Assembly: GCA_964247055.1 (NCBI GenBank)
Contig: OZ176055.1
Coordinates: 496,001 to 560,000, forward strand
DNA length: 64,000 nucleotides
Origin: Paragordius varius
Taxonomy: Eukaryota; Animalia; Nematomorpha
Direction: 5' to 3'
In this document: in pieces, positions 13,846-36,500 of the stretch
Layout of the letters: each line of letters begins with the position of its first letter
Numbering within the stretch: position 1 is the stretch's first letter
Translations under genes and position numbers: made by a program
Notes under the pieces: generated by a model
What the model was told of the DNA's origin: nothing
What the model saw: only the letters and a program-made list of their open reading frames with translations
Databases searched by the model: none

Positions 13846-15448
13846 ATGATCTTGTCATTTATTTCAACAAAGATTATGATGATTAAAATGATATGTAGTC
13901 TAATCATTTGTAGCAATTTAGCATACTGTCGACAGGATTTTGTTTCAAGCGCCCTATCAAATTCGATAAAATCGCCCAAAAAAGTCGCTTTTAAACGTCG
14001 GTACCAAACTCCGTTGTATGTGCCAAGCCTTGTTGACAACAATTCCATGGTTCCTCAATACTGTAGCGCAAATACTGAAGGTTGTGCTTTTTTTTCAAAA
14101 TTAATTTGTTAGATTCTTAGTTTTACACTTTTCAAATAAAAGTCTTATCCATACTCTAATTATTCATCTCATAATTAATCAGTTTTACGCTGTATACAGT
14201 AACAATTAAAATTGTACAGACAAAACGTAAAAATATAAGGACAAATATTTGGTTTAAAAAGACCGCTCTGTTTATTTTTAAACTTGATGTTTTGTAAATG
14301 TAACTCATTGTTTAGAATTGCAAATGAAATAAAGTTTAACACTATCAGTTACGTATTTTACAGTTACAATTATATAATTTACTTAGGAAAAAATTAAGGT
14401 TACAATAAAAAGTATGGTATTGAAAAGAAATATTTGTCATTTATATTTTTATGTTTTGATTGTATAATTTTAAATTTTACTCTATTATTTATATATAGAG
14501 GTTTACATTGAAAGTCTATTGTGCTATCAACCGTTGCGAGGATTAATTTCTAACATGGAAAATTATAAATATTTGACCGTAAAAGGCAATTCCGAAGGCA
14601 ATGTAACATCCAATTTGATTAAAAACGTAACTTTTTTCACAAATTGTGAAACAGATACTAAAAATCAAGATGGATCAGTCCTTCAAATTGAAAAAGGTAC
14701 TTAAATTATAGAAGCATTTTAATTTACATCATATATATATATGTTTTTTACAAAATAGCCATCAATGAAACATTGTATCAAAAAAAGTTGGAACGACTCA
14801 GAAACTTGAAAAGTTTACATTTTATTTTTATGTTTTTTTTAAATATACAGTATGAGTAAGTATACATTGCTAGAAAGTCATTTACTATTGCCAAATAGCA
14901 CATCCAACAAAGGGCAGTATTATTGGCTTATAGTTATTTTTTTCACTTTTTACTATTATTAGCCAATATTAATTCCTTTGCTGCATATTCTATTTGGTGT
15001 AGTGATTACTTTCTAGCATATATACTTACTATACTTTAATATGGAAATTAAATCTGAATATTTTTTTAACTAAACTGAAATTATACGGACAAAACGTAAA
15101 AATATTATGAAAAATATTTTTTCACCAAAAAACAACCACACTTTTTTTGAATCTAAATTTTTCCGTTATATATTATATATTTACAACTTTAAAATTATAA
15201 TTGATTATGTTACCGATATACATATCTATTTCATATTTTGCAATTGCAAAAAATGATTTAAATTTTACAAAATCGATATTAAACAAGTATGGTTGTTTTT
15301 TTTATAAAAAACACATGTGTCTTTATAGTGTTACGTTTAGTCCGTATAATTTTTTTACTTTTTATCCTAAATTAATATAGTGGAGGCCATCGTTAATCTA
15401 ATGTCTCAAAGTAATATATATTCTGGGTTTAAATATTTTTTGTAACAT

Positions 15449-15508
<60 letters not shown>

Positions 15509-17429
15509 TAATATACCATTTACAATTCAAATTCACACTGAAAATAAATTATGTGTTTTCGAACAATATAACAACTATTAATATTAATTAAATATATCTT
15601 TATGGCATAGTTCATTATTTTTTCAGTATTATTTTAATTTAAAACAAAATTATTATTTTTTAAAAATATAAAAAATATAGGTAATTTTAATCTTAAAAAA
15701 CATGCATTTTATTTGAGGGTGAATTTGAATTGTAAATGATATATATATATAAATTTGATAATTTTATAGACTCACGGCCAAATGGCCGTTCCATACGTCA
15801 TATCAATGCTAAAAGTAAAAAATTACATAATTTGCAAAATAATGTAATTTTATTTATAATATTTCACATTTTTACCAAATTAGTTCGTTGGGCCCTTAAA
15901 AAAATGGCAGGTTTAGTATTTAATTTTTATTTTGCCAAAATAACTATATATTTACAGTAAAAATTGAAGAAATCATAAGGACAAATCGTGCATAGTAACG
16001 GACAAAAACACTTTTATAATTATATTTATGTTTTATTTTTTAATTTACAGTAAAAATTGAAATTATACGGACAAAACGAAAAATTTTTTTATAAGACAAC
16101 CAACCATAGTTTATTAAACACTCATTTATCCCAAATAAATTATTTAATTACAATTGTAAAATATATAATTGATTGTGTTACCAATATACATTTCCAATTC
16201 ATACTTTCCAATTCTAAACAGTAAGTTATATGTAAAAAAGTCAAGTTGGATGTTTTTTGAAAAAAAATATTTGTCTTTATATTTTTACGTTTTTTCCGTA
16301 TAAATTAATTTAATATATTTAAAAAAAACCTCATTTCAGTTTGCAGTCTATGGAATATATATGGATATTATTAATACCAGTCAAATTAATATAATTCTAA
16401 ATCGTTAAATAAGTAGTTTATGCAGGATAAATCAAGGTTTAAAAACTTAATGTTGTTTGTTTGTTGTAAAAAATATTCTTTTAGTTTTCAACATTTTGTC
16501 TGTATAGCTTCAATTTTAACAAACTTTTTGTGTAGAGTGCAACACGACAGGCGTTTTGAGTCCTGAACCCAATATGGTTACAAAATTAGTACAGATCTCG
16601 AAAGGTAAAGTTTTTGATTCATGTAATTTATCCTATATTTCTTAGTCTAATCAAAGAGCGACATTTTATTATACTAAAAACTATATGGTTAATGTGACAT
16701 TCTTTGCAGTCATATCTAAAGCAAAGAGGGAAATAACCGCTGCCTTTTAAGATTTCTTTCAAAAATAATAATTTTAATAATTTGTGATAAAATTTTATTT
16801 GGATCATAAATAAATATTTGGAATATCAATCGTAGTTCGTAAATTTTAATCGTTTTGAGTTTAGTAAAATCCTTAAACAAAAAGCCACATTGCCGACAAT
16901 TTTATTTTACGCCTCTATATTTTTGGAATGTGTTTTAAATCATTTGATATATTAAAAATGAAATATTAACTTCTATATTACTGGGTAAATTTTACAGGGA
17001 GAATTGTTCACACATCTAAAACAAATCTTGGGAATGTGACGTTGGAAACTTATATAAGTAAATAGTGAAAATACTTTGCTAACATATTTTAAAAAAATTA
17101 TATATATTTATTTAAACATTTATAGTTGAAGTACCTCCTCGAAAAGAAATTAATAAAAATCTTACTACGAATGCCGCGGAAAAAAATAATTTAACCATCC
17201 AAGAAAACAAGCTCTTGACAAATCAGCAAGCTCCTGGTTATATACCAATGATACTTATAAAAGGTTTCACCTTTTGCTTAAATAAATTAAAGAAGAAATT
17301 TTTACAGTAGTAAAACATACAGTAAAATCAAAATCCAGACAAAACTTTAAAAAGTAAAGGAATGCTATTTGTAACGACCATATTTGTTTTAGATATAAAG
17401 TTATTTTTTTGCTTTCCAAAAATGGAGCA

Positions 17430-17460
<31 letters not shown>

Positions 17461-20400
17461 CTCACTAATGTAATAAATGATCAAATATTGTTTTGTTTAT
17501 CAAAAAAAATTTAATCAGTCCATCACTTTTTACTTGATTGCCTTGATAATTTTTAACGTTTTTACTATATTTAGTACCAAATGATACGAAAAAGTTGAAT
17601 AAGGCAAATAATGATAATAGCAGTTACATCAACAATATAATGCAAAAAATTATGTCACCAAACGTGTCGCAAACCGATGGAAAAAATATGACAAATATGT
17701 TAACCAAAGATGAAATTATACAAATATTAAGTAATACAATTATATCATAAACTATTATTTCTTACTATATTAAAAAAAGGATGGTACACAAAAAAAGCAA
17801 ACACATCCGACGAAGTTTATAAATTTTCATAATTTTTAAGAAACGTTATTGAGGTTTCAATAAATTTTGGCATGCATTTAAATAAATTCGTCGCAAAAGC
17901 TTTAATTTATAAATCTAACATAAATTATGCTAAAACTTTTTGAATACAATAGATTATTTAGCTTAAATGGAAATTATACTAATTTTTAAAAATCTTGTTT
18001 AAATTATTAAGCTATTATCTCGTAACTTTTTAAAATTGGTCTTCCATTCAGTGGAAAGGGTGTACAACTTCAGACGCCATCATGGGAAGGGGTTTATTAA
18101 TTTTTTTATAACTTAGTTTTTAATTCAACTTTTGAAAAACTACAGCCTAACTTGGGCTTAAGGATTCATTTGCCGGGCCTCCGCCTTGATTATTATTGTA
18201 AAATTATCTGATATATCGCTATTTATCCTCCTTTAAAGGGTGTACACAAATATCTTCACAGACCGCATTTAAAAAACCGGCGAGCCGCATTCGAAATATA
18301 TATGGGTTATCAAATCATTTCATTAAATTTCGAACATAAGACTTTAAAATGCAAATTTTTTCTAATTCTGATGATTTTACCAATTATTTTATTAGCATAA
18401 TATATGGATATCCAGATTTTTTGCAGGCCACCTGTTGGGGATTCCTGATTTAGTTTATCGTCATTATCTTTTAAGCGTTTTTCTTAAAAAAAATGGTGTG
18501 TGTGTTATAAGATACTCATGTAGTGACTCTTGGCTTTCTCATAAATTAATGTTCTCCATTTTTGACGATCCTGTGATTCTCTCAACAATCGAGGAAAAGT
18601 TCGGTTTGTTATTGATTTAAGCATGTTGATCCACCGCTTTTTGGTTCGGCCCCTTCTGCGGGTGCCATCTACCAACCCAAAAAGTATGCTTTTTTCTAGC
18701 GAGTCGGATCGCAGGATATGACCCAGATATTTTAGCTGTTTGAAGATTATTAAATCGTGAAGTAAAAATTCGGGTTTGATGAGGTTGAGGATATAAGAAT
18801 TGGAGATGTGGGCTTTCCAGGAGATTCTCAATATTTTCCGAAAGCACCACATTTGGAAAGAGTTTATGCGGGCTTTGTCAATGGATTTGCATATCCATGA
18901 ACAGCTGCGATTAAAACCCAATTCGGTCCCACCGATTGGTTTCCTATCCTCAGAGGTGTGAGACAAGGATGTGTCCTTTCTCCCCTCCTATTTAACTTAT
19001 AAACAGAAACATTAATACGCATTTGTAACTTTCCCCAACATATTACGGCACGGATCGGTGGTCTTACTATTTGCAATCTCCGGTACGCCGAGACACCATC
19101 CTCTTGTCAGAATCCCATACGGACATGATCTATCTTTTAAATAATCTCACCATCGAAGCAAGTTTGATGGGTCTTAAGCTGAACCCAGCTAAATCTAAAA
19201 TAATGATCCTAAACGCTCCACAACTACCATTTACAATCAATAACTACTCCATCGAACTAAGTGATCACTGTAAATATCTAGGCATAATTACATTCGACGG
19301 TAGCTCGAATCCCGAAATCCGAGCACGGAGCATTAGGACGTGCTACTATGGGTAAACTATCCAAAATTTGGAACTCGTCGGTCATAAGATTTCCAACCAA
19401 ACTTGCCATCCTGAAGGCGATAATATACCCCGTGGCAAAAATAAATTAGATTCGTTCTAAATATTTTATGACAATAAAAAAAACGCATTATGAAAGTTTT
19501 AACTACTCTCATATGTCGACCCCTCAATAAAATAAGACATAATTTAAGTTTGATATTGTTTTATTTTTTATATATTATTATGCCATGTATTTACAGTAAA
19601 AATTGAAATTATACGGACAAAACGTAAAAAATAAAGAATTTTTTTCTAAAAGACAACAATATTTTTTATATCTTGATTGTTTCAAATAAAAGTCATTTTA
19701 AACTCCAAAGTATAAATAGAAATTTATATTGGTAACACAATCAATTACATATTTTACGATTATTTTTAAATGATTTAAATAGGATAAATCAAGTTTTGAA
19801 AAAGTATGGTTGATTTATGAAAAAACATTTTTGTCTTTATATTTTTAAGTTTTGTCCTTATAATTTCATTTTTTACTGTATAACCTAATTTTCAGATGTT
19901 ATTTCGAATTAAACTTAAATATTTGTGTTTTCCAACATCATCAGCTTTGATAGCACATTATTGCAAAATATTAATTATTATGACTTGCAGAAAACATAGT
20001 CTATATTAAAATTTATTATTATACTGACAAAAGGTATAAAAATAATGAAATTTAATCAGCTATAAACTATTTATATAAGATAGATCTTAATTTAATAATC
20101 AAGTGCTTAAACAATTTATATCTTTTCACCCAATTTTGAATCTATATTGAAAAATCGATCTTTTTATTTTTACATTTTGTCTGTATTATTTGATTTATAC
20201 TATGTATGGCAATAGTTTAATCTGATTTATTCAATTCCCATTCAGATATCTCCACAACAACCAGTTCAAGAAATAAGAAAGATCCGTCGGAAATAAAGAC
20301 AAAAATCACTAAATCTAGTATTTATTGATATATGTTAGAAATTTGCGCATATTATATATTGAGAACACATTGCTTAACTCCGCTATAAAAAATTCATAAT

Positions 20401-21407
20401 ATAAATCTGTTTAAGTTAAAATATATATTTATATATTTATTGTAAGTATTTTCAGCAACAAATTGGTATTAAAAATTTCTAATGCTAATGCAAAACACCT
20501 TGAAATCAGTATGAAAACAATCTAACAAACTGAAGTCGTATTTTTAGCTGTTTAAAGGATAGATCTAAGCAAATCATATTTTTACTGGTTTAATCCAAAA
20601 TTTTCCATATATTTTTAAAATTATAGAATAATGTAAGTTTATTCATATTTATATGTTTAAATCAATTTATTTTCAAAGCTAATTTTAAATGAACTGGAAC
20701 ATTTTTTTTGAATTGCCAGTTTCAAAACTATAGTCATAATCATACTGCCCTCGATGAAAATGAATGTATTTTTCAAAATTTTCAATGCTTATATCTTTAT
20801 TTAACATGAATAGGTTGATAAAAGAAACTGTATAAGGATATTTTATGACTAATTCAGAGGTTTATGTTTGAAATAAAAAATCATTTTGAACCACTAATTA
20901 CAGTAAAAATTGAAATTATACGGACAAAAGGTAGAAATATAAAGACAAAATGTTTATCAAAAAAACCACCATAGTAATCTCGGTTTTTAAAATTTCAATC
21001 ATTTTTTGAAATTGCAAAATAAGAAATAGAGATGTAGATCGGTAATACTATCAAACCTTCTTTATAATTGTAATTTAAATATAGGAGAAATTAAGTTTTG
21101 AAAAGTATGGTGTTTTGAAAAAATTGTCTTGATATTTTTACGTATCCGTATAATTACAAATTTTACTGTAATTTTTTTAGGATATCAAAATAAAATGTAA
21201 ATTTGATATGTTGATGGAAAATATATCGGGAAATGCCGCATGCTCATGCTTACATATTCAGCATGTCCCTACATATAGGCATTCTTTTAAAATGTTTTCT
21301 AACCGATAAAAAGCGAACAAAGCTATTTTTCCACGAGAAGCGCTCAATTTTTTGAATACCGAACTATTTTGATTTTCAAAAAAATCATTTATATTGTAAA
21401 TATCATT

Positions 21408-21440
<33 letters not shown>

Positions 21441-24400
21441 AGAAACGGAAATCAGTTATGAATTGGTAGGCGCTGGTGACATTAAATTTGATGAAAAAGA
21501 ATTTACTCAAAGACGAGGCTCCGATCAATCTTCACTAACTGTCTTAAGTCCCTTTAAATGTAATTTTTGCATTTAGTATTTTAATAGTTTATCTAACACT
21601 TTATTAACTTTTGGGAGGAATTTTAAACCAGTGGTACTTTTTTGTGGCCTTGAAGTATTTATTAAATAGTTTGATATATCAATTTTGTGTATAAATATCG
21701 GTAAATGTGTCAAGCAACTATGAGATTACGGCACTTGAGACAATATAAATATATTTTTCTGTCTTTTAAAATTAATTTTTGGTAAGTACCATGTTTTAAA
21801 CCATGGCAATTTCATAATACAACTTACAATCTGTAACTGTTTAGGGGCGCATTGTTAAAAATATATATTTAATTAATATATAAAATTGCAAAAAATCTTA
21901 TCATATCCTTTTCCAAGATTTAATCTTTATTTTATATATCTTTTAGTCGTGTTACTGGGAATCGGATTAGGAAGTATGTTGATGCATTATATTTCATGCA
22001 CGTTTTTCAATAAAAATTTAAATTATACAGACAAAACGTAACTAATCAATAATATTTTTTTCCAAAATAGACAACCAAACTTTTACCACCCACTTTTTCC
22101 ACATAAATTATACAACTGAAAACATTAGTAAAAATTCAAAAACGGACAGAAAATATAAAGACAAATTTTTCAAAAAACAACCACACCTTAATTTTTCTCA
22201 TATTATATAAGTACAATTGTAAAATAAAAATTGATTATTTTACCAATATACATATCAATTTCCTACTTTGCAGTTCAAAACAATGAGTTTTTAAAAAAAT
22301 CAAGATATTAGAAGTATGGTTGTCTTTTAGAAAAAAATATTTGTCTTTATATTTTTTCGTTTTATCTATATAATTACACTTAAAAAAAGTAAATAATCTA
22401 CATTCGCATCTTTTACTAAGCAAAACAAACGAGTTGCATTTAATGTTTATAAAATCATGGTTTAAAAAATACAGGTGCCTTTTTCCAAAAATTATGGTTG
22501 TCTTTTAATTTATACATACGGTTAGCTACAATGTATGAGATTAAAGATACATATTAGTTACATCTTATAAATATGTATTTTGATATAATTTCATCTTAAA
22601 CGCATTATATAAGCTTACGTTTCTTTTGGTGCCATTATGGGAACGGCAAGTGGAATAGGGGCTGCCGGAGGGGTGGGTGCAGGTGGGGCATCTTTTCGCC
22701 CTCCTGGAAATCCTGGACCTTCAGTTCCAGGAACTTCAACTGGTTCCTCCAATCCCTCTAATGTTCACACTGCTCCTCAAGGTTTTTATTTATACTTAAA
22801 TTTTTATTCGAAAGTTTTTGGGAAAAATGGGAAATATAAGAAAAACATAAAATATGTTTGGACCCCGACTTCAAAAAATTTTTAGGGTTTTTTAAAATTT
22901 CTATATTGAAATTTCGTTCACCAATTTATAATATTAATGAAAATTGCAAACATTATTGACTTTTTTATTGACTTTTTTGGTTGTCTTATACACTACTTAG
23001 GTCAAAAAATAAGGGAATTAAAACTAAAATTTTAACTCATAACCGGAATACAAATGCGAAAGAACGATTCTTTTCCCAAAATTTTCGAAATGAAATAAAT
23101 GAGATCTAGCAAACGGCTAAGGTTTTAATCTTGTCTAAAATATTGATTAGACACCTGGCTGTGGCTTCTATATTTGCCATTTATAAAAAATGTTTTGAAT
23201 TAGTATTAAGATAAAATCAATATCATAGGTAACAAAGTTATATTTGGGGAAAAGTAATATCACTTTTGATTGAATTATTATTGAAAAAATCAAAAAAATA
23301 GTTTAATATGTTTGCTTAAATAGTAGAATCACCCCAAGCTGGCCCATCATGGAGTATAATTTTTTTAGATATTTTGTTCATTAACACTTAAATGTATTTA
23401 TGAGAAAAATTTTTTTGTTTAGGACCTGATCCTACCCCAAGTTCATTACCTGTACAGGAAACAAATGTCCATGAGCCTTTATTAGGTTTTTAAAATAATT
23501 AAAATATTTATATAAATTTTTAAGACATATGTTTTAAAATACGAAATTTGGGTGTTTAAAATTTCAAATTCACCCTAAATTTATATTATGTGTTTGAAAA
23601 TCAAAAAATACCTATATTTTTCGATATTATGCCATAAATAAATATTTCATATCAATAATAAGTTAGATGAGCCTAAATTTACAAATCATTTTTAGATCGA
23701 ATTTGAAAACTGTTTAAAAAATATTTGAGCGTAAATTTTAATTTTTCAAGGGTGAATTTGCAGTGTAACTGGCATATGTTATATTGGTGGTCTCCTAAGA
23801 TAGGGAGAAAATCCTTTGAATAAGATTAAAAAAAAATTTAATTTCCAATTACAGTAAATTGAAATTATACAGAAAAAAAGTAGAAATATAAAGATAAAGT
23901 TTTTGAAAAGACAATCAACCATACTTTTTAAAATATATAGTTATCCTACAAAAATCAATTAATTACTGTAAAATACATAATGGATTGTGTTACCAATTTA
24001 CAATTCTATTTCATATTTTCAACTTTAAACAATCATTTTTATTTAAGATAAACAAGATATAAATAGTATGGTTGTCTTTTATAAAAAAATAATTGTCATT
24101 ATATTTTTACGCTTTATCCGTAAAATATCCATTTTTACTCAGAGTCTTTAAGTATATAGCCATCGATAAATACATATTTAATACCAGTTAAATTAATTTT
24201 TCCCACCAATCTTTATATCAGAACCACAATCAAAACCTACGCCTTACGATGATAATGGCGATATACCGAATTTCGAGGATGACCTTTCCTCCATATGTAA
24301 GTTTAACTAAACTAAACTAAATTACAGTAAAAATTGTGATATACGGACAAAGCTTACAGTCATGTATCCTTTATTTTATTAAAAATTAATTTTTTTGTTA

Positions 24401-27400
24401 AATGGGAAATATTTGGTAAAGATAGAAAAAACAAGGGCTCTATGGCAATTCTTACACTTTCTTGATGAATATGATATTGTTAATACCATAGAGCTCTTGT
24501 TTTTTTTTCCATTCTTTAACAAATATTTACACCCATTTAACGAAAAAAAATAATTTTTTAATAAAATAAAAGAATAAAAATATAAAAACATATTTTTTTC
24601 TTATTATTTATAACTCATTATTTATCGTTGAAAAGGAAATAAACATACATGTATATTGGTAACACACAATCATTTATTATTTCAAAATTGTAATTAAGTA
24701 GAGTAAAAATTGAAATTATACGGACAAAACGTAAAAATAAAACATTTTTTTTTTCAATAGACAACCATACTTTTTTAATTTATTTAACCTATAAAATCAT
24801 TCATCGTAAAATACATAATGTGTTACCAATATACATCTCTATTAACTTTGCAATTTAAAACAATGAGTTATATTTATAAAAATAAGATCCAAAATGTATG
24901 CATGTCTTTTGCAAAAAATCTTTGTTCTTATATTTTTATATGTTTTGTTCGTATAATTCCAGTTTTTACCGTATTTTTCCTACCTCAACTCTTAAAAGGA
25001 TGAGGGTTGCCTAAAAATATATTAGAATTTTTATGTTGTTTTACAATTTAGCATCTGAAGGTGAAATTCCCGAATTCGAAGACACTATCCCTGACATTGA
25101 TTGTAATATTTTTTAAAAAAAAATTTTAAATAAATTTTATAAAATATATTTTATTTTCCAATATGGTTAATTACAGTTGATTCACTGGATGAGAGTACTG
25201 ATACTGGAGGTAAACGAATTTACACAAAACAATATGTAGTTATTTAACCTCAAGTTGGTTCTTATAAACACCTCAAGTTCTTCCTTGAACATTTCAAGTT
25301 GGTCTTTGAACATTTCAGGTTGGTCCTTGAACATTTCAAGTTTGTCCTTACTTCAAAGAGTATACCCATAATATATTAAATGGTATCTTTATCGATTTTT
25401 AATTTAATTATACTTAAATTTTATATGTTTCTTACAAAAAATATATATTTTACTTGTTGGGTATTTTTTTTATTTATTAAACAGTACTATTTTAACAATC
25501 AGATCAACTTGAAATGATTAAGGAACACACTTTAAAGACCAACTTGAAGTGCAAATGCTTATTATCCAATTTAATTCCTTTTTCGGGGGGTTTAGTATCC
25601 GATTATAGCATAGAATATGACACTCCTACAAATGAAGGTAAATCGATATACTCTAAAAATTAAATATAAAAAGAAATATTTTTTAAAAAATAGAAACCAT
25701 CCCCATAACTATTTTAACCTTGATTATTTTAGTTCAACTTATGATTTTGGGTTTGCAAAATTCAATAAAAAATGAATTTTTACGGACAAAACGTAAAAAT
25801 ATAACTACAAATATTTCAAACGACAACCATACTTTTCAAACCTTAATTTATCCTATAATCATTTATAACATCGTAAATTATGTAATTGATATTGTTACCA
25901 ATCTCTATTCTATACTTTGGAGTTTAAAATAATGAGTTATATTAAAAAACAATATTTAGAGAGTATGGTCGTCTTTTAGAAAACAATATTTGTTTCATTT
26001 TGCGTTTTGTCCGTATAATTTCAATTTTTACTGTAGTAAATAGAGATTTACATTGTTAACACAACTCAATACTATAGTTCAAAATTGTAATGTGTTAGTT
26101 TATATGCATAGAAAATGAAAATTAAAAAAGTATAGTGTCTCTTTTTCAAAAAAAATATTTATCTTTTATTTTTTACATTCTGTCTGTAGAATTTCTATTT
26201 TTACCGTATCATACATATTTCGTAACATTTTCCAACATTTACCTCATTATAACACAAAAATACTATTAGGTCACTCTAATGCAGAAGGACCTCTTAGACA
26301 AGGCGGAATACCCAATGTAATTGATGAAATTTTCAGACCGCCTAGACCCTTTTTAAATCCACCACCAGTTCCAGCTCCACTCCCTGGTTTGTAAGAATTA
26401 TATTTGTAAAGAAGTAGAATACTAATGATATGATTGATTTTATCAATCCTATAATTTATAATCTAGTTTTTATTAACCTATACGATTAAAGTAATAGCTG
26501 GCTTACAATATCACTATTTTATTTATCAAATCTAACCAATGGTTCAAAAATAAGAAACATGGTTTTCTTTTATAGTAAATTAAAGTGTTTCGCTTTTATA
26601 ATTTTATTATACATTTTTCTCTATATAATTTATTGTACAATATAAATTGAAATTATACGGACAAAACGTAAAAAGGACATTTTTTTTCAAAAGATCATAC
26701 TTTTTTAAACTTCAATTTACCCTATAAAAAGCATTTAATTTCAATCATAAAATACATAATTAATGGTGTTACCAATATACATTTCTATTATATACTTTGC
26801 AATTTAAACAATGAGTTATATTTGAAAAAAATCAAGATTTTACAAGTATGGTTGTAATTTGAAAAAGAATATTTGTCTTTATATTTTAACATTTTGTCCG
26901 TTTTAATTTCAATTTTTACTGTATAACTCTATCTATACTACTAAAACCTCTAGTTATCCCAGTTAATCCTATTGCAGAAGTAAACATTCCAGGAAATTTA
27001 CCGCAAAATATTCCTGAACCACCCCCGATTGAACCTAATGCAGACTTGGTAGAACCAGGACAGGCACCCTCAGAATCTGGCTCTGGTTTATTTTACATCC
27101 CAAATTATTTTATATAATATATTTTCAACATTTTATTACTCTAGAACGAAAGTTATATATATATATATATATATCATTTATAAAACAAATTCATGATTGA
27201 ACAAAAATTCAAATTCACCCTAAATTAAATTATATGTTTTTTAAATTTAAAAATTACCTATGTTTTTTATTTTTGAAAAATTAAATTTTCTAAATAATAC
27301 TTAAAAGATATAAACTGTGTTATAAGAATATAAATCATATTAATGATGAGTTATATTACCCCAAAAACTCATAATTTATTTTTAGGGTGAATAATTGTTC

Positions 27401-30400
27401 AAGGGTAATTTTGAATTGTTCGAGGGTGAACTTGAATTATTCAAGGGTTAATTTGAATTGTTCGAGAGTTAACTTGAATTGTTCAATGGTGAATTTGAAT
27501 TGTAAATGGTGTATAATATATAAATTTTTTTGCCTATATTAGATATTACTCTCGACAGTGTGCCCGAAGAATGGATGGATGTCAACCAAATTGAAAATCC
27601 AAACGGTTTGAAAGATATTATTAATTTTTTTGTTAATATTTATTATACCAATAAATATATATATATATATATATAGATGTTCCAGAAAATTTGAACAGTT
27701 TATTGGTTAGAAGAGGTGGTTACAATTTTATTTAACGGATTATATTATCATATTTAAAGGAATCAACACAATTAGAAACAGTAAGAAAAATAACAAAATT
27801 AACACTTTTTTATTTTATATTTATTGTTTTCTTGAATCTATTTACAGGGGCCACCAGAATGAATAGATGTAAGAATTGGAAAAATTTTAAATGTGTTTTT
27901 TGTTAAAAACTACATTCTTAATATTTTTTAGTATCGGGCGCTCTAGCTATAGGTATTTTTCCCGCAAATATACAGTATAAATTGAAATTCTACGGACAAA
28001 ACGTAAATATATAGAGACAAATACTTTTTTCTAAAAGACAACCATATTTTTTAAATTTTTATTTTTAATATTACTGATTGTTTTAAACAGCAAACTATGA
28101 AATTGATATGTAAATTGGTACACATCAATTTTTTATTTTACAATTGTACTATTGTAATTTATATGAGAAACATTTCGGTTTAAAAAGTGTGGCTGCCTTT
28201 TGGAAAAAATATTTGTCTTTATATTTTTAAGTTTTGCCCGTATAATTTCAATTTTCGCTGTACAAATATGACAGAATGCACATAAAAATATGATGATATA
28301 TTTTCTGATATAGATAGATTAGGATTCTCATGGTCTTTTACTTTTTGAGCCTTAAATATTGTTTAAAAAATATATTTCCATTACTTTGGAATTGGTGTAC
28401 ATATTAAAAAGTCGTAAAAATTTCCCACATAACATTATGTTAAACAAAGTTTTAATGAAAGCTAAATGCTTCATTTCAATAAGTATCCTTAATAATCCTT
28501 ATCTTTTCGCTTTTCCCATGACATATTGGTAGTTTTATATCTTATAGCTGAATCTTGTAAACTACTGTTTTAAAAACTTATTCTATTAATTTATATAATT
28601 ATCAAACATTGTTCTATTGTATTAGATAAAAAAGTTTATGTATTTTTTACATTTACTAACTTCAAGAGTCTCAAACTGGGATAGCTACAAAACACGATTG
28701 AAATGAACAGCTATTATTAAAATCAAAATGTATCAAGTTATTTCTGGTAAAATGTAGCCCGAAGCTTTTTATTAATTATTTATCCAACCATAATATACAT
28801 TTATTCGCCTGTTGCATTACTATTTAAAAAGTATAGAAAAAATATGGCGGCAAATTTTTTAAAAATTTTACATTTTTTAGTAAAGTTTTTTTTTGTATAA
28901 TATCAAGAAAGCATAATTTTATATTCGGCTCGTTAAAATACTTTTGACGATATTCAATTTTAAATAGTTATGGGATATAAAACTACCCCAAAATGTAATG
29001 GAATGTTATAATACTTTGCTTCATATATATTTTATAAGGGCATCTAGTTTTAGCCAAAAACATATTTAACATAATTAATGATCGGTAATTTTACGATTTT
29101 TCGATATGGAGCAAATAAATTAAAAGTATCTTTTTCTAAAAACTCATAAGATACTAAAGCTTAACCAAACGTACCAGGAGAATCTCATATATCTACCTAT
29201 CATAGAATATATTATTTCAAAAAAATATTTTTTATAATCCCAATTTTGTGCACTGTATATTTTTTTAACATAAAATATATTTTTGTTAAATCCACGCAGC
29301 CGTAAACAGATTAAGAAGAGGTAACGCATGATAATATTTGTTTTAAAATTTTTTCAAAAAAATTAGAAATGTATAAAATAAAATTTTATTAGCCGTAATG
29401 ATTGGAGGTATGTATTTATGAAAAATAATATATATCAAGATTTATTTTAACGATTATCGCAATTATGTATCATTTTTTCTCATACAGGTGCTAGATCTAT
29501 GCTTCAAAGTAAAAATACCAATTTTTAATTGTTTTGTTGTAAAGTAAAATTTAAAATATTCTAATAAGACTAAGGGCCATGTGAATGAGCTTATTATCTG
29601 AATCATATAAATGATGGATTATGAGAAAATATATGGGGATGTGATTGAGTTTTTAAGGCGGGAATTTCGAATTTTTTTTATTAATATGCTGAAAAACAGT
29701 TTTACTGGCGATTTATATGTGGGTCTTATTAAAAAGTTTTGTTTAATGTAGATATTCTTGCATTTTATGAACGTAAATAAATTTAGCAATGACGATAAGC
29801 TTAAGGCCTGCAAGATTTTAGCCAAAGAAATAACCCAGGGGCGCGCTTGGAGAATTAAATAAAAATAAAACTATAGGGTGCGAATTATCAAGATTTCATC
29901 GATATGGAAAAATATTTTAAAAATACAGATATAAGGATCTCATTGATTGAGATTATAATATTTTAGTATTCTATATTTTTATCTTGAATTTTTTTTTAAA
30001 GAGGGCGCAAGAACCCATATTTTGAATTTGGTGGGGCGTGAGCAAAAAAAGGTTAGGAACCACTGATTTAAAGTCTCACCTTTTCCCAATTGCTATTTAT
30101 ATTATAATTTTATCAATTATATTATTAAGGTTTTATAAATAAAGATCTCCTTTTGGGACTAGTAAATCATATATATTGGCCAATTAGTATTAATTAGCTT
30201 TTGTCCCATTTTGGTTTTGACGTATCTTTCGTTCGGAAATTCTAAAAATTGGGTTGTTTATATTTCTAAACCAAGTATGGCGTAAAATTTGACAACATAT
30301 ATTATGTATGATACATTGAACTATTATTTTAGATATGAGAAATGGTAATTTTTTAAACTATAAATAATATATATAGTGTACTAATGTGAAATAACAAATT

Positions 30401-33242
30401 ATAAAATTATATTTCCTCAGGCGGACTTGAATGTAAGCACCTATTGGCTTATAAAATCTCTTAAAACACTATTTTATAATATATATATTAGTATACGAGA
30501 GAACTATTGAAAGTTAAATTTAAATTTTCTGACGTATACAGTAAAAAATAAAATTATACAGAAAAAACGTAAAAATATAAAGACAAAAATGTTTTTTCAA
30601 AAGATAAACAACAATATTTTTTAAACCTTCTATTAAAATCATTCAATAACAATCGTAAAATATTTAATGTTACCAAAAAACATCTCTATTTTATACTTAA
30701 AAAATGAGTTTTTACAATTAAAATTTTAAAAGTATGGTTGTCTTTTGGAAATATTTGTCTTTACTTTATATTTTACGTTTTGTCCGTATAAATTTTTTTA
30801 CTGTAATATGAATATATTTATTTCTAATGTCGAATAATTTGGCAAATATTAGAATTTGACGAAATTACGGATGATATCGAAACTGAATTAGACAGTATAT
30901 ATATTTTTACTCAATCGATTCCGTTTATTTTTCGATATGATAAACTTTTTATTTACCATTTACACTTCAAATTCACCCTTGAACAATTGGAATTTACCCT
31001 AAAAGTAAGTTATGTGGATTCGGACTAATATAACTAACTCATCATTAATATGAATTAAAACTTATAGTGCATAGTCTATTATTTCGGTATAATGTAAATT
31101 TTAAACAAAATTTCATTTTCAAAAAATATAAATATAAGTTACAAAACATAATTTCAAAAGTGAATAAATTTATTTCAGGAATGGGTGAATTTAAATTGTT
31201 TAAGAATAATTTGAATTGTTTGAGGGTAAATTTGAATTTTTGAAGGTGTATTTGAACTGTAAATGCTATATATATATATATATATATATAATGTATTTAT
31301 CTATTTATGTATAGTTATCGAAGAAAATATTCAAAGTATATTATATATGTATTTTATTAAAACGACCTTTATAAAACCAACAATCCACCAATAATGAGGG
31401 AATTCCGTCAATTTAAATAATCACTCAATAACTCAATTTGACTTATATGGGTCAAATTCCCATAATATAATAAAACTGGTAATTAGATCAATATTATATT
31501 TGTTATCAATCCATCCCATGACAGTACTATCTAGGTGATGACTCGGTGATTTTGCATTAACCCTTTTTAGTTTTTTATTTTTTTCGGAAAAAATTAAAAA
31601 AAATTGAATTATACGGACAAAACGTAATTATACAGATAAGATTGTTTAAAAATATGACAATTATACTTTTTAAGACCTTATTTTTTCTCATATAAATTAT
31701 TAAGAACATATGTAAATGATTATCCAATATATATCTCAATTTTTGACTTTGGATTAAAACAGTGAGTTATATTTAAAAAAATCAAGTTTGAAGGTATGAT
31801 TGTCATTTAGAAAAAATTATCAGTCTTTATATTTTTTAAGTTATATCCGTATAATTTTAATTTTTAGTGTAAGTGTGCATAGAATATAATTTAAAGACAT
31901 CCCCATTATTAATATAAACCTTTCTAAAGACAAAGATTCGTTTGAAAGTCTTAACTAAAAAATTATTAGGTATACCAAAACGGCTAATCCGCAAATAACT
32001 AAATGCGTAAGTAAAATGACCTGTGCTTTGCTTTACGATTACTGAAAACAGAATTTTTTATTTTTAAATATTGGACTACTCATTAACATAATCATAAAAA
32101 AGATTATAGTATGTTTCACTAAGGGGTAGCCATGTATTTTTTATAACAAACCATATAATCTAAAAAATATGATAAATTTATTTTTAGGAGCTGATGAAAA
32201 TGGAGTTGGTATGATTAACATTATTGCTAAATAAAATAAAACGATATTATCCAATGAATACCTACTTATATTGGCTTTTTATGAAACGGATATTCTTGCT
32301 TAAGACTTTAATTCAAATTGGGTATCCAAATACCCCAGATTTAACATTATTACTGAAAGAAACAGTCCGGATTTATATGCTTCTATCCTAATAAAAATTA
32401 TAAAATAGCCGTAATATCTAAATATAATTTGGTTGTGAAAAAAAAAATGTTCCATATCAATCCAATTTTAAACAGGCCTGGCGTATCCAACGACATCAAT
32501 TTGAATCGAAAGATTAAAATGAATGTGTCATATACAAGTGTTAAAAGCAAATATTTTTGAACCTAAATTTTTCTTACAATATAATTTTGAATAGGAAATT
32601 CTTTATCTAAAAATTTATTATCAAAATAATACAAATCTTAACTTTTTTTAATATCTTTAGCGGATGATGAGGAAGGGCTTAGAGGTATGCAAATACTTTC
32701 TTAGTAATATTAAAATTTAATAAAATTTAACAAGTTATACAGTAAAAATTGAAATTATACGGACAAAATGTAAAATATTAAAGACCAATGTTTTGGTCTA
32801 AAAGACAACCATACTTTTTAAATCTTTATTTTTTTACCTTTACTGATTGTTTTAAACTTTTAAAGTATAAAATAGAGATTTTAATTGGTTACACAATCAC
32901 TGAAACGATTGTATTTAAATGATTTTTATAGGTTACTTGAGGTTTAAACAAGTATGGTTGTTTTTTGAAAAAAATTTGTCTATATATTTTTACGTTTTGT
33001 CCATATAATTTCAATTTTTACTGTAATTTTATGTACTGTGTGTGATTTTAGATACATTTAGAGAACATATCAGTAATATCTATACATTTTTATAATCATC
33101 ATAATTTTTTGACTTGCCCCTATATTTGTGTCATTAGGAGAACCATCAGGTAAAATTTAAAAATTTAACCATTTATTCTACTATTGAATTTGTCAGGAGC
33201 CCATGAAAGTTCATTTTTTTATATATTTTAATTTTAGGCTAA
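13846..33242 (+). CDS. Unknown probable type I single-pass membrane protein (~733 aa if all exons are used), ~36 exons, all internal exons phase 1-1, microexon-encoded C-terminal tail
   Basis: Exons: 13846-14080, 14499-14696, 14759-14812, 15770-15814, 16536-16604, 16998-17057, 17126-17236, 17575-17730, 20246-20317, 21443-21547, 21947-21973, 22614-22781, 23423-23485, 24222-24296, 25052-25102, 25177-25209, 25596-25637, 26270-26386, 26954-27085, 27543-27605, 27677-27715, 27760-27780, 27848-27868, 27932-27952, 29488-29508, 30333-30344, 30421-30432, 30492-30512, 30853-30894, 31315-31335, 32188-32208, 32661-32684, 33052-33072, 33138-33149, 33197-33208, 33238-33242. Each internal exon has AG/GT ends, a length divisible by 3 and an open frame. 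Signal-peptide-like start; TM-like LTVLIVLLGIGLGTYVSFGAIM; Pro/acidic tail. Continuity across 17.7-21.4 kb and the last exon are the least certain parts. Confidence 0.68.
15449..15510. repeat. (TA)n microsatellite; others near 17425-17460, 21410-21440 [(TA)n(GT)n], 31267-31290, 53430-53452, 56395-56437
   Basis: Directly visible dinucleotide runs. Confidence 0.9.
15516..15738. mobile_element. MITE family B (TIR CCATTTACAATTCAAATTCACC); other copies ~23560-23775, ~27200-27510, 30956-31265
   Basis: Inverted ends CATTTACAATTCAAATTCAC / GTGAATTTGAATTGTAAATG. Some copies carry 21-bp subterminal repeat arrays. Confidence 0.7.
16710..16750 (+). other. Candidate alternative terminal exon (VISKAKREITAAF*) giving a short secreted isoform
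   Basis: Strong acceptor TTCTTTGCAG at 16700-16709, in frame (phase 1) with exon 16536-16604, ending in TAA at 16748-16750. Confidence 0.4.
18490..19437 (-). mobile_element. 5'-truncated, 5'-inverted RTE-clade LINE (RT core on plus ~18905-19437; C-terminal segment on minus ~18905-18505), intronic
   Basis: Plus strand: GVRQGCVLSPLLFNLY, YARD (YADD), GLKLNPAKSKIM, KYLG, MGKLSKIW...TKLAILKAIIYPVA. Minus strand: CSWICKSIDKARINSFQMWCFRKILRISW...RRRGRTKKRW...QDRQKWR. Confidence 0.85.
19594..19878. mobile_element. MITE family A, representative intact copy
   Basis: TA|CAGTAAAAATTGAAATTATACGGAC ... GTCCTTATAATTTCATTTTTTACTG|TA. Confidence 0.9.
24357..24560. mobile_element. Internally deleted derivative of the 62823-63850 foldback element, nested in a family A MITE
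   Basis: CAGTCATGTA...AAAACAAGGGCTCTATGG / CCATAGAGCTCTTGTTTTTT arms interrupt a CAGTAAAAATTG...ATACGGACAA end that starts at 24324. Confidence 0.6.
27400..27504. repeat. Five 21-bp tandem repeats (CAAGGGTGAATTTGAATTGTT consensus) inside MITE family B
   Basis: Head-to-tail units at 27400, 27421, 27442, 27463 and 27484. Units alternate between CAA- and CGA- starts. Confidence 0.85.
29600..30065 (-). mobile_element. Internally deleted hAT (Charlie-like) transposon remnant
   Basis: Minus-strand terminus CAGTGGTTCCTAACCTTTTT at 30065. The decayed frame LIRPTYKSPVKLFFSILIKKIRNSRL resembles the hAT C-terminal dimerisation motif. Confidence 0.45.
32740..33023. mobile_element. MITE family A, representative intact copy
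   Basis: TA|CAGTAAAAATTGAAATTATACGGAC ... GTCCATATAATTTCAATTTTTACTG|TA. Confidence 0.9.
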
Positions 33243-33544
33243 TTTGCTTGAATTCATATTTTTACTGTTATATATTTGTGTTAAAATAAATGATTTAACA
33301 ATACATCACTTTTTTTATGAGATATAGAGCTAAATATTTTTTCCTTACTTTTTATCCTGATCATGTATGTTATATCAAAAACCGGTAATTAAAAGTTAAT
33401 ATTATATATCATCACATAAACGTGTATTTATTGGAATTGAAATGTGACTTTCAGTGTCATAGGAAAATTTTATTGTTTCAAATATCATAAAATCAGATAT
33501 GGATTAGCGGGTAAAAATTTAAGCGTTTTACAAAAATTTTTTAG

Positions 33545-36500
33545 CTATAAGCATCTTATAATACGTTTTTCAAGCACAATAAGTGATGGGCTATACTCAT
33601 CTTCGTGTAAAATTATGCCTGGAGCTGATCCTAAATATTGAGCTTGGGGAAATATCGGTACACATTGAACTAAAATTGGTAGAGTTTTATTCATTGAAAT
33701 TGTTTTTGAAATTACTTTGGATGAAGTATTTGAGGCAGCATTCTCAGTTATATTACGTGGTATGTACACTTGAATCTCCAAGAATTCCAATGTAATTGCA
33801 ACATGAAACTAAACGAAACGCAAAAATATAAATATACTAATTTTAGAGTAAAAATAGAAATTTTACGGACAAAACGTAAAAACATAAAGACAAATGTTTT
33901 TAAAGACAACCATACTTGTTCGAACTCAAAAATTATTTGAAATTGCAAAATATGAAGTAGAGATATATAATGGCAAAACTAATCAATTATATATAATACT
34001 AAAATTAAGATTTGGAAAAGTATGGTTGTTTTTTGAAAAAATTCCGTATAATTTCATTTACTATACACACTCTACCTATTTATGTAATTTACAGTATGCA
34101 TTTTAATGGTTGCTTATTTCACACTCCAGTTGGGCAATTCGAAAAATACTAATAAATGGAAAAAAACATCAAAATGTTGAAAAAACAATTTTACCTTGCT
34201 TATATTACTGTGTTTATTTATTTAATATTTTCTTGTTTTTTTTCATACACTACTGTGTTGCAAATTGCCAATTTATAGTTTGCAATAAGCAACTATTAAC
34301 ATGCATACTGTATGATTTAATACAATTTATAGGATGTTTCAATCCTTTTATCAAAATTAATCTCCAAAATTATAAAGAACATTGAAAGATTATTATATGT
34401 TAAAACTGTTTTTATATACTTCGGTTAGGACACAGATTAAAATGTATGGTAACGCTAAAATTCATGTAAACGATATTTTTTGAAATGATTCTTTTAATAT
34501 AATAATAACAAATAATTAAATAAAAAGTGAAAAGATTAAATCATTTAGGTTTCTTAAATGAGTAAAAATAAAGTATCTATCATACTGTATTGTTATTTTA
34601 TTATGCAAACATAACGTAAAACACATCGACAAATATTTTTATTCTACAAAAGCCACACTTTCAACCAATTTTTCTATGAAAAATTACAACTGTAATGTAA
34701 AAGTGATTGATTGTGCAACCACTTTACAGCTCTATTTGCTTTGCAAACAAGAATTCGAAAGGAAGCTGTCTTTTGATAGTAAAAATGTTTGCCTTTAGGT
34801 TGTAACGTTTTGACTGTATGATTTCGAATTTCAGTGTAGTTGATAAAACAAATGTAAGAGAGATAGCATAGAGAATTATTATATATCGCTCTCATTGAGT
34901 TCGCTTCCAGGCGAGAATTTTCATACGCTAGAGCCAAATTTAGAACCATATTTAATCCCACTGGTGTGTCAGTCGGGGTACCTGTTAAGTAGTTCGGTCT
35001 CTAGTTTTTTTTTCCTTCAACCCACATATAAATACGTCCCGTATGAGCTCATCAATGTTCCCTTCAACTCATATGCGGCGGCTAAATTTTTGAGTCTTAT
35101 TCAAAATTCTAAGAATCCTTCACCCACTAGTCGTTCCGCTCTAAAAAAATCGAATCGGGCTAAAAAGGTATTTTTGGTTGGTTGAAATATTTTCACCCCA
35201 GCTTCATAAATCTCCTCCCAAGAGATGTTTTCAATGTTAAGCGGGTAAAAGAATTGCTCCATTTTAGAAATGTTATCAATACCGGATTGGGCAAGAAAGA
35301 TGGCTTTAATATTTTCATTATTATCCTGTATTCCTTTAATCACTAAATTTCTTCGTAAATATTTAATATATTCCGTAAAATTATTATTGATTTTTATAAC
35401 TTTCAATACTTATTTTTTCCATAATAATGAATATGGACAAATAAATAACCGCGCCAATGTAAAATATGCAACCGAGTAAACATAAGTTGCTGGGAATCAA
35501 TTTTTCGTCCATACATGTGTTTTCAAGGCTGGTAGATGGTACATAATCTATATTCCAATGGCCATATAAGGCTAAATTAATGATTGTTGTTGATTGAATC
35601 AGAGATTTGGGAATTATATTATCAGCTGTTGTTTTATCAAAGTCCGTTTTTATTGGTTCTGTCGGCAAACTCGTTGCCCTAGTAACCGGAGCTGCAGACG
35701 AAAAGGATAAAATGGCGTCCACATTTGGGGTGGGAAAGTAGAATTCAAATATTTTGGATGATATTTAAGTGTATCCGCCACAAGAGTAGATAACAATAGA
35801 ATCAGTAATCCAATCTGGTGTTATCAATGTCAAATTTAGGGTGGTTAAAAATTGGGAAAACTTATTTTTCGTGCCTTCGGTTAAGGTTTTAATCCAATTA
35901 TCAATTTTCAAAATTAGAATCTGTAATAACGCAAAAATCTTTCTCCTTGATTTTTTCAATGTTAGTGAAATTTTCTATTTCAGGATTTAAGAACACTTTA
36001 AAATTGATATGACCATCATTAGTTGTTATTAATGTCCAAAGAACATCGATATCTGACATATCATATTGAGAAGATTTTTCAAGATCCACAATAAATATTT
36101 TATCTGTAAACAATTTGCGTTTGGGATAAAATAATTCTTGCGGTAAAAGTTGGTCACAAGTTACTGATAACCTAACCCAATCGGAAGTTACACAACTTGT
36201 TTCATGAATATCTCTTTCTTCGATTTCGGGTGGGTCTTCCACATTAATTCCAGGAGTTTCTGCAATAACCAAACTAACTTGACCCGTTAAATAGCTGTAT
36301 TTTTTAACACCTCTAGACACTAATAAATCATCGATTATGTTTTCATCTTTAAGGTTTTTCCAACCACATAATATTTTATATTTTAAAAAAGTTGGTCCAT
36401 CCAGTTATATTTTGCATGCTGATTAGCCCTTTATCGCGTTCGTCAATTCAGCGCGTTGCTGCCCGAATAATTTGATAAGAGGTTTATGGTCTGTTCTAAT

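Follow-up and report, generated by a model that had tools for sequence, protein, structure and literature searches.

Positions 13846-33242 of a 64-kb stretch of AT-rich animal DNA (contig OZ176055.1, hereafter the window) carry a predicted + strand gene, many of whose exons are only 12-27 nucleotides (nt) long. The GC content of the window lies between 23 and 36% in 2-kb bins, and is ~23-26% across most of the locus. We rebuilt the gene model independently and obtained 38 exons with 2,328 coding bases, encoding 775 amino acids (aa). Its reading frame passes through 775 codons and 37 junctions without meeting an internal stop. Because 13-34 kb holds only scattered short open reading frames (ORFs), an ORF finder misses the gene, as the original prediction, made from the letters of the window, had claimed.

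The exon chain and its features

All 36 of the 36 internal exons have a length divisible by three and are in phase 1-1. Fourteen are micro-exons of 12-27 nt, comprising eight of 21 nt, four of 12 nt, one of 24 nt, and one of 27 nt. The rebuild therefore bears out the earlier proposal of one open frame over ~36 exons with phase 1-1 internal exons, and it returns the same counts of 14 exons of 12-27 nt, of 21-nt exons and of 12-nt exons. The 14 distal exons that had been named (27760-33208) are all present between AG and GT, with the first codon split 1+2. The earlier exon list lacks a further 21-nt candidate at 29300-29320, and its donor at 14062 has to be replaced, since it joins exon 1 to exon 2 as a TAG stop; the donor at 14080 works. 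For exon 20, the stronger donor at 26391 (GTAAGA) was tried and rejected, as it breaks the frame with every possible next acceptor. The exact number of exons is uncertain, at about 36-40.

A thread of this kind needed testing because short open AG...GT segments are common in such AT-rich DNA. At 25% GC, we estimate several open segments of 12-27 nt per kb, and the 19.5 kb of the locus contain 429 phase-1 AG...GT candidates. We used a frame-blind scan, which called for a YAG acceptor preceded by a pyrimidine-rich tract, a donor reading GTA, a GC content of at least 0.38, and a length of 9-30 nt. On the + strand of 27.7-33.3 kb, the scan returned eight segments, where the remainder of the window predicts ~2.8. 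Each of the eight had a length divisible by three (binomial P = 1.5e-4), and five were exactly 21 nt long, compared with 1 of 55 in the controls. Over 21.9-33.3 kb, lengths divisible by three were found for 14 of 25 frame-blind segments, or for 13 of 19 when each acceptor was taken once with its nearest donor; 12 of those 13 were open in phase 1.

Codon usage and chain scores were examined with a log-odds model trained on three unrelated ORFs of the window (the Ank and BRCT gene and the 7404-8360 ORF). The codon log-odds were positive for 35 of 37 exons. In a best-chain search, phase 1 of the + strand scored 63.7 bits over 13.8-21.95 kb and 84.6 bits over 21.95-33.3 kb, against 3-13 bits for the other + strand phases and 1-19 bits for the minus strand. 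Regions with ordinary genes score in all phases in this search, and ~15 bits of the 63.7-bit figure stem from retrotransposon debris in intron 9. The pattern of the chain exceeds threading luck.

The predicted exons and the features between them are given below, with codon log-likelihood ratios (LLR). MITE stands for miniature inverted-repeat transposable element, TM for transmembrane, and UTR for untranslated region.

13846-14080, +: exon 1; ATG, signal-peptide-like start, ends in phase 1; donor AAG/gttgtg at 14080; codon LLR +7.4
14192-14498, 22008-22383, 26602-26946, 27964-28277, 30534-30821: examples of related MITE copies
14499-14696, +: exon 2, 198 nt, phase 1-1; only the phase-1 frame open; GC 0.31 vs flanks 0.12; LLR +6.2; a MITE ends at 14498
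14759-14812, +: exon 3, 54 nt, lower confidence; chosen by the unsupervised chainer; preceding intron 62 nt
15770-15814, +: exon 4, 45 nt, lower confidence; GC 0.44; acceptor ttatag, donor gtaaaa; chosen by the chainer
16536-16604, +: exon 5, 69 nt; only the phase-1 frame open; GC 0.42; donor AAG/gtaaag
16998-17057, +: exon 6, 60 nt, lower confidence; only the phase-1 frame open; LLR +1.3; not chosen by the chainer
17126-17236, +: exon 7, 111 nt; LLR +17.8, the best of the upstream half; preceding intron 68 nt
17575-17730, +: exon 8, 156 nt; only the phase-1 frame open; LLR +9.6
18117-18197, +: exon 9, 81 nt; acceptor cttag, donor gtaaaa; GC 0.37; chosen by the chainer
18505-19355, no strand: retrotransposon debris in intron 9, outside the gene; weak RVT_1 match (E = 7e-4) at 19071-19352; ORFs on both strands
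20246-20317, +: exon 10, 72 nt, lower confidence; only the phase-1 frame open; LLR +4.1
21443-21559, +: exon 11, 117 nt, the last putative ectodomain exon; only the phase-1 frame open; LLR +7.8
21947-21973, +: exon 12, 27 nt, first third of the putative TM helix (VLLGIGLG); acceptor tcttttag, donor gtatgt; GC 0.44
22008-22383, no strand: MITE copy in intron 12; many window copies begin aligning at 22008-22013
22614-22781, +: exon 13, 168 nt, rest of the putative TM helix, then Gly/Ala/Pro-rich start of the tail; GC 0.54 vs flanks 0.19; only the phase-1 frame open; LLR +25.5; contains ATG 22637
23324-23353, +: exon 14, 30 nt; GC 0.53; LLR +6.3
23423-23485, +: exon 15, 63 nt; preceding intron 69 nt; only the phase-1 frame open; LLR +8.7
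24222-24296, +: exon 16, 75 nt, acidic, IPNFEDD; donor gtaagt; LLR +12.1
25052-25102, +: exon 17, 51 nt, acidic, IPEFED; LLR +10.6; passes the frame-blind scan
25177-25209, +: exon 18, 33 nt; preceding intron 74 nt; LLR +8.3
25596-25637, +: exon 19, 42 nt; only the phase-1 frame open; LLR +4.6
26270-26386, +: exon 20, 117 nt, proline-rich; GC 0.46; only the phase-1 frame open; alternative acceptor possible at 26285
26954-27085, +: exon 21, 132 nt, proline-rich; GC 0.45; LLR +20.2; only the phase-1 frame open
27543-27605, +: exon 22, 63 nt, carries EEWMDV; LLR +9.8; opens the short-intron cluster
27677-27718, +: exon 23, 42 nt; preceding intron 71 nt; only the phase-1 frame open
27760-27780, +: exon 24, 21 nt, GINTIRN; acceptor aaag, donor gtaaga; flanking introns 41 and 67 nt
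27848-27868, +: exon 25, 21 nt, RATRMNR; frame-blind match; GC 0.48; only the phase-1 frame open
27932-27952, +: exon 26, 21 nt, LSGALAI; frame-blind match; GC 0.52
29300-29320, +: extra candidate exon, 21 nt, AVNRLRR; frame-blind match; acceptor cgcag, donor gtaacg; phase-1 open; hydrophobic at positions 2 and 5 like its neighbours
29488-29508, +: exon 27, 21 nt, GARSMLQ; frame-blind match
30333-30344, +: exon 28, 12 nt, NMRN, weak alone; good sites (acceptor ttttag, donor gtaatt); GC 0.25; LLR -0.3; following intron 76 nt
30421-30432, +: exon 29, 12 nt, GGLE; frame-blind match; GC 0.50; donor gtaagc
30492-30512, +: exon 30, 21 nt, LYERTIE; preceding intron 59 nt; LLR +2.4
30853-30894, +: exon 31, 42 nt, acidic; only the phase-1 frame open; LLR +8.0; just upstream of a repeat starting at 30954
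31315-31335, +: exon 32, 21 nt, IIEENIQ, weak alone; GC 0.19; three frames open; LLR +3.3; adjoins a (TA)n tract
32188-32208, +: exon 33, 21 nt, RADENGV; frame-blind match; LLR +4.5
32661-32684, +: exon 34, 24 nt, ADDEEGLR; frame-blind match; GC 0.54; donor gtatgc
32738-33025, no strand: MITE filling intron 34, 288 nt, with 57-nt terminal inverted repeats
33052-33072, +: exon 35, 21 nt, DTFREHI, weak alone; acceptor ttttag, donor gtaata; GC 0.24; LLR -0.3
33138-33149, +: exon 36, 12 nt, REPS; frame-blind match; flanking introns 65 and 47 nt
33197-33208, +: exon 37, 12 nt, GAHE; acceptor tgtcag, donor gttcat; LLR +3.3
33238-33290, +: last exon, after a 29-nt intron; completes a Ser codon, then TAA at 33240-33242, a short 3' UTR, and AATAAA at 33285-33290

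Intron 26 (1.5 kb) holds two splice-flanked islands that are open in phase 1, the 21-nt candidate at 29300-29320 and one of 15 nt at 29393-29407. Both may be further or alternative exons.

Gene ends, introns and mobile elements

The ends of the gene are coherent, with a TATA-like box, an ATG that opens a signal-like start, and a stop codon followed 43 nt later by AATAAA; TATTTAAA lies ~75 nt upstream of exon 1. An unspliced reading before the last exon also stops, at 33230-33232. The last intron itself (33209-33237) is 29 nt long and AT-rich, and reads gttcat...ttttag.

Exons differ from introns in GC content (38 vs 23%), and none of the exon bases lies inside repeats. Intron lengths are bimodal, with 13 introns at 29-76 nt, none at 77-337 nt, and 24 at 338-2048 nt, and a short intron adjoins each of the four 12-nt exons. 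Four of the long introns (16605-16997, 17731-18116, 21560-21946, and 25210-25595) are repeat-free and measure 386-393 nt each. No similarity was detected among these four introns of near-equal length, which are not homologous to one another.

Much of the long-intron length is accounted for by a MITE of ~290-310 nt with 57-nt terminal inverted repeats starting TACAGTAAAAATTGAAATTATACGGAC..., which has 25-60 related copies in the window. In a DNA sequencing run, the blocks of high depth are MITE repeats, and the exons sit between them. Removing the element shrinks intron 30 to 57 nt and intron 34 to 69-79 nt, depending on the choice of element ends. After this removal, 250-1700 nt of unique sequence are left in most long introns. 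A role for the MITE as a general intron creator (an "introner") was ruled out, as introns 30 and 34 are the only ones that collapse to short size. Short introns of ~60-75 nt are the basic state, and many of them were later lengthened by MITE insertions of ~300 nt.

The predicted protein

Topology was assessed with Kyte-Doolittle windows of 19 residues, which is a heuristic. Hydropathy values above 1.4 are confined to residues 1-28 and 390-420, with an N-terminal peak of 1.83 (residues 2-28) and a second peak of 1.75 at residues 400-418, formed by exon 12 together with the first part of exon 13. The product has the appearance of a type I membrane glycoprotein that carries a signal peptide and a single glycine-rich TM helix. 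Its layout would be a signal peptide, an outer part of ~370 aa, a TM helix split over the 27-nt and 168-nt exons, and a cytoplasmic tail of ~346 aa. The second peak lies upstream of the micro-exons, which agrees with the earlier placement of the micro-exons C-terminal of a TM helix.

The two sides of the helix differ in composition. The outer part (~373 aa) is rich in Asn, Lys, Ser, and Thr, and N-x-S/T sequons occur at 13 of the 41 Asn upstream of the helix, compared with none of the 27 Asn downstream. Confinement of the sequons to the outer side fits an outside-inside topology, and the earlier assignment of the micro-exons to the cytoplasmic tail is probably correct on this count. The tail (346 aa, residues 430-775, window 22782-33242) contains 13.6% Pro and 18.8% Asp+Glu, has a net charge of -45, and is rich in SH3-type PxxP motifs; from its composition, it is probably disordered. 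It contains only 2 Lys next to 18 Arg (Lys 0.6%), against 37 Lys and 16 Arg in the ectodomain (Fisher P = 4e-6). The scarcity of lysine suggests selection against ubiquitylation, and such a "lysine desert" might protect the tail from this modification. The combination of a membrane anchor with a micro-exon-built, lysine-poor tail is what is distinctive at this locus.

Exons 23-38 (12-42 nt, eight of them with the one-heptad length of 21 nt) supply the final 108 aa, in which a basic stretch gives way to an acidic one. Just 4 of 2000 shuffles matched the mean helical hydrophobic moment of this segment. On inspection of the peptides, the second and fifth of the seven residues are hydrophobic in exons 24-27 and in the candidate at 29300-29320. 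This periodicity suggests that each of these 21-nt exons encodes one heptad, in register with the others.

The tail also contains possible short linear motifs. An acidic IP-x-FED motif occurs in two exons, as DIPNFEDD (24222-24296) and as EIPEFEDT (25052-25102), and EEWMDV in exon 22 fits the W-x-x-V pattern of LC3-interaction motifs.

Competing explanations and related systems

We think it probable that a single real gene, restricted to its lineage, occupies the locus and encodes a type I membrane glycoprotein; it would have grown by phase-1 exon addition or duplication, and its splicing would be constitutive by default. Growth would have taken place inside phase-1 introns, where an added exon leaves the frame intact only if it is symmetric (1-1), hence the uniform phase. 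By such addition or duplication of exons, disordered modular proteins are usually built up, and symmetric exons show a preference for encoding disorder and frequently originate by tandem duplication (PMC3632108). Constitutive splicing would be the default expectation, with exon skipping permitted by the design only.

Several results weigh against this explanation. Ten donors in the model read GTT instead of GTA, exons 3, 4, 6, 10, 28, 32, and 35 are individually weak, and the junction of exon 12 with exon 13 is the weakest step of the model. Three small RNA runs (19-30 Mb each, same species label) gave no contig on 27601-33600. Pfam returned nothing credible for 10 exons, phmmer with exon 2 found no match among 1.84e9 representative proteins, and a word search of 5.8-billion proteins with the 22637 ORF had no match, even to itself. 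A comparison of nine exon-plus-flank micro-exon units found no DNA similarity beyond the splice sites, so the case for a duplication origin comes down to the shared heptad pattern.

No internal protein repeat was found in the 775-aa model either, and these two results together rule out recent exon duplication. The DNA sequencing run came from the same or a near-identical organism. On 27601-33600 its pieces match exons and introns alike with 0 differences, and it is therefore uninformative about constraint; of the 22 variant sites listed for the DNA run, none falls in exons, where ~1 is expected.

The locus could also consist of two genes on the same strand, with the split at 21974-22613, which we consider unlikely. 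Gene A would run from 13846 to ~22040 and encode a membrane glycoprotein with a short tail, its helix being completed by reading through the 21973 donor (SMLMHYISCTFF). Gene B would start at ATG 22637 and encode a cytosolic, proline/acidic-rich protein with a micro-exon C-terminus. Its MGTASG... start fits a loose N-myristoylation pattern, and the ATG has A at -3, G at +4, and an in-frame stop nine codons upstream. Reading through the donor is also open for 22 codons and gives an equally hydrophobic helix of 21 residues (~1.67), and the acceptor at 22613 (tataag) is the weakest of the model. Against this, the donor at 21973 matches GTATGT perfectly and, like the acceptor at 22614, is in phase 1; both halves of the gene are exclusively phase 1. 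The read-through stop and its AATAAA fall inside the MITE that begins at ~22008, with the AATAAA before the stop. The asymmetry of sequons and lysines fits one membrane-spanning protein, though it would fit two proteins too. Weighing these points roughly, we favour one gene over two about threefold.

Two further readings assign the micro-exons a role in generating variants. The first, a variation system like that of the schistosome micro-exon genes (MEGs), would give tail variants by combinatorial inclusion or skipping of frame-neutral micro-exons, notably those of 21 nt, and appears improbable to us. It draws on the fact that any subset of exons can be skipped in frame because all internal exons are symmetric, on a predicted model that falls under the operational MEG definition of PMC7653826, and on the helical register of the amphipathic segment, which skipping a 7-residue exon would keep. 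The RNA runs, on the other hand, yielded no contig in the region, and the product, as a large membrane protein, departs from the small secreted type (PMC10526429). Host-driven diversification makes little sense for a variable part that would face the cytoplasm, and is unlikely because the micro-exon part is probably cytoplasmic. There is no paralog family in the window, where tblastn of the model matched its own exons only. The splice sites of the micro-exons are strong and consensus-like, as for constitutive exons, and a UGC motif precedes only 1 of the 14 acceptors. The second reading, attractive though we give it a slim chance, takes the 21-nt exons as register-preserving cassettes whose inclusion or omission, in whole heptads, would tune the length and charge of an amphipathic helix at the end of a lysine-free cytoplasmic tail. 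The gene would then belong to a genome-wide micro-exon gene family, independent of schistosome MEGs, in a non-flatworm parasite.

Finally, we regard it as very improbable that there is no functional gene, whether through chance over-threading of AG...GT segments or because the locus is a decayed, unexpressed pseudogene. The abundance of phase-1 candidates (429 in 19.5 kb) and of open AG...GT segments (several per kb) speaks for this possibility, as do the searches made, which gave no RNA contig and no homolog. It is opposed by the scores of 64 and 85 bits, where controls built alike from the opposite strand, the remaining phases, and different regions reach 3-19 bits, by the eight of eight frame-blind islands with lengths divisible by three, and by the 775 codons and 37 junctions without internal stop. 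The composition of the tail, with 13.6% Pro and 0.6% Lys in a 75% AT genome, is also non-random.

The preferred one-gene model shares much of its architecture with MEGs. With 26 of 38 predicted exons shorter than 70 nt and divisible by three, including a consecutive run of 16 such exons (22-37), it falls within the structural MEG definition of Olson et al. 2020 (PMC7653826). The MEGs of schistosomes and tapeworms have similarly long runs of in-frame exons of <70 nt (DeMarco et al. 2010 as cited in PMC7653826; PMC10526429). They also share with this gene long introns that carry repeats, a first exon that is comparatively large and encodes a signal peptide, and their invisibility to ORF finders. 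Schistosome MEG products, however, are small secreted proteins, the longest in S. mansoni having 189 aa (PMC10526429), whereas the present product has 775 aa and a hydropathy peak of 1.75, and so lies outside the schistosome sense of a small secreted product without membrane anchor. The original prediction of a MEG-like gene thus stands for the exon structure and not for the product. Unlike in MEGs, the product has a putative TM helix, the micro-exons would form a tail that is probably cytoplasmic, the most frequent exon length is 21 nt instead of 15 nt, and about half of the coding sequence lies in exons of >81 nt. The Pfam and phmmer searches with single exons brought up no sequence similarity to MEGs. 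Splice variation has been demonstrated for schistosome MEGs, whereas this gene is known from predicted exons alone, and its host genome is apparently not that of a flatworm.

The gene also resembles the symmetric-exon genes for disordered proteins described by Schad, Kalmar & Tompa 2013 (PMC3632108), in that its symmetric chain encodes a proline/acidic, probably disordered region, and exon addition or duplication offers the natural account of how it grew. It differs from them in having all 36 internal exons in phase 1-1, in exons far smaller than typical human symmetric exons, and in the lack of detectable recent duplication.

The heptad pattern invites comparison with proteins whose exons follow structural units. 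In the 54-bp exons of fibrillar collagen and the PEVK exons of titin, exon length is a whole number of structural repeats. Here, each 21-nt exon would correspond to one heptad (two helical turns), and adding or skipping such an exon would keep both frame and structural register because the exon equals one heptad. In contrast to collagen and titin PEVK, there are only 8-9 heptad exons, they are not near-identical, and the helix or coiled coil is deduced from periodicity. One heptad per exon would be a clean case of exon boundaries tracking a structural repeat.

Bilaterian neurons use a programme of 3-27-nt micro-exons that depends on SRRM4 and is marked by an upstream UGC enhancer motif. As in that programme, the micro-exons here are in frame, 12-27 nt long, and located in a probably cytoplasmic, interaction-prone region. 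They are clustered in one gene, in contrast to neuronal micro-exons, which are scattered singly over many genes, and they lack the upstream UGC motif (present in just 1 of 14 cases).

If the model is right, micro-exon architecture extends beyond small secreted flatworm proteins to the intracellular tail of a large membrane protein. If the cassette reading is true, the MEG principle itself would reach beyond secreted host-interface proteins into intracellular signalling tails. Standard gene finders are likely to struggle with exons of 12-21 nt, and micro-exon genes of this kind could add to apparent gene loss in such genomes.

Outside the gene, the window contains a 318-aa open frame at 7404-8360 (-) with a hydrophobic C-terminus, which belongs to no Pfam family and had no match in the word search of 5.8-billion proteins. 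Retroelement remains lie downstream of the gene, with an RT_RNaseH_2 ORF (E = 2e-23) at 36446-37048 (-). Upstream, 9720-11462 (+) encodes ankyrin repeats (E = 1e-16) followed by weak, below-threshold BRCT-type matches (best E = 7e-6), and is a BARD1-like gene.

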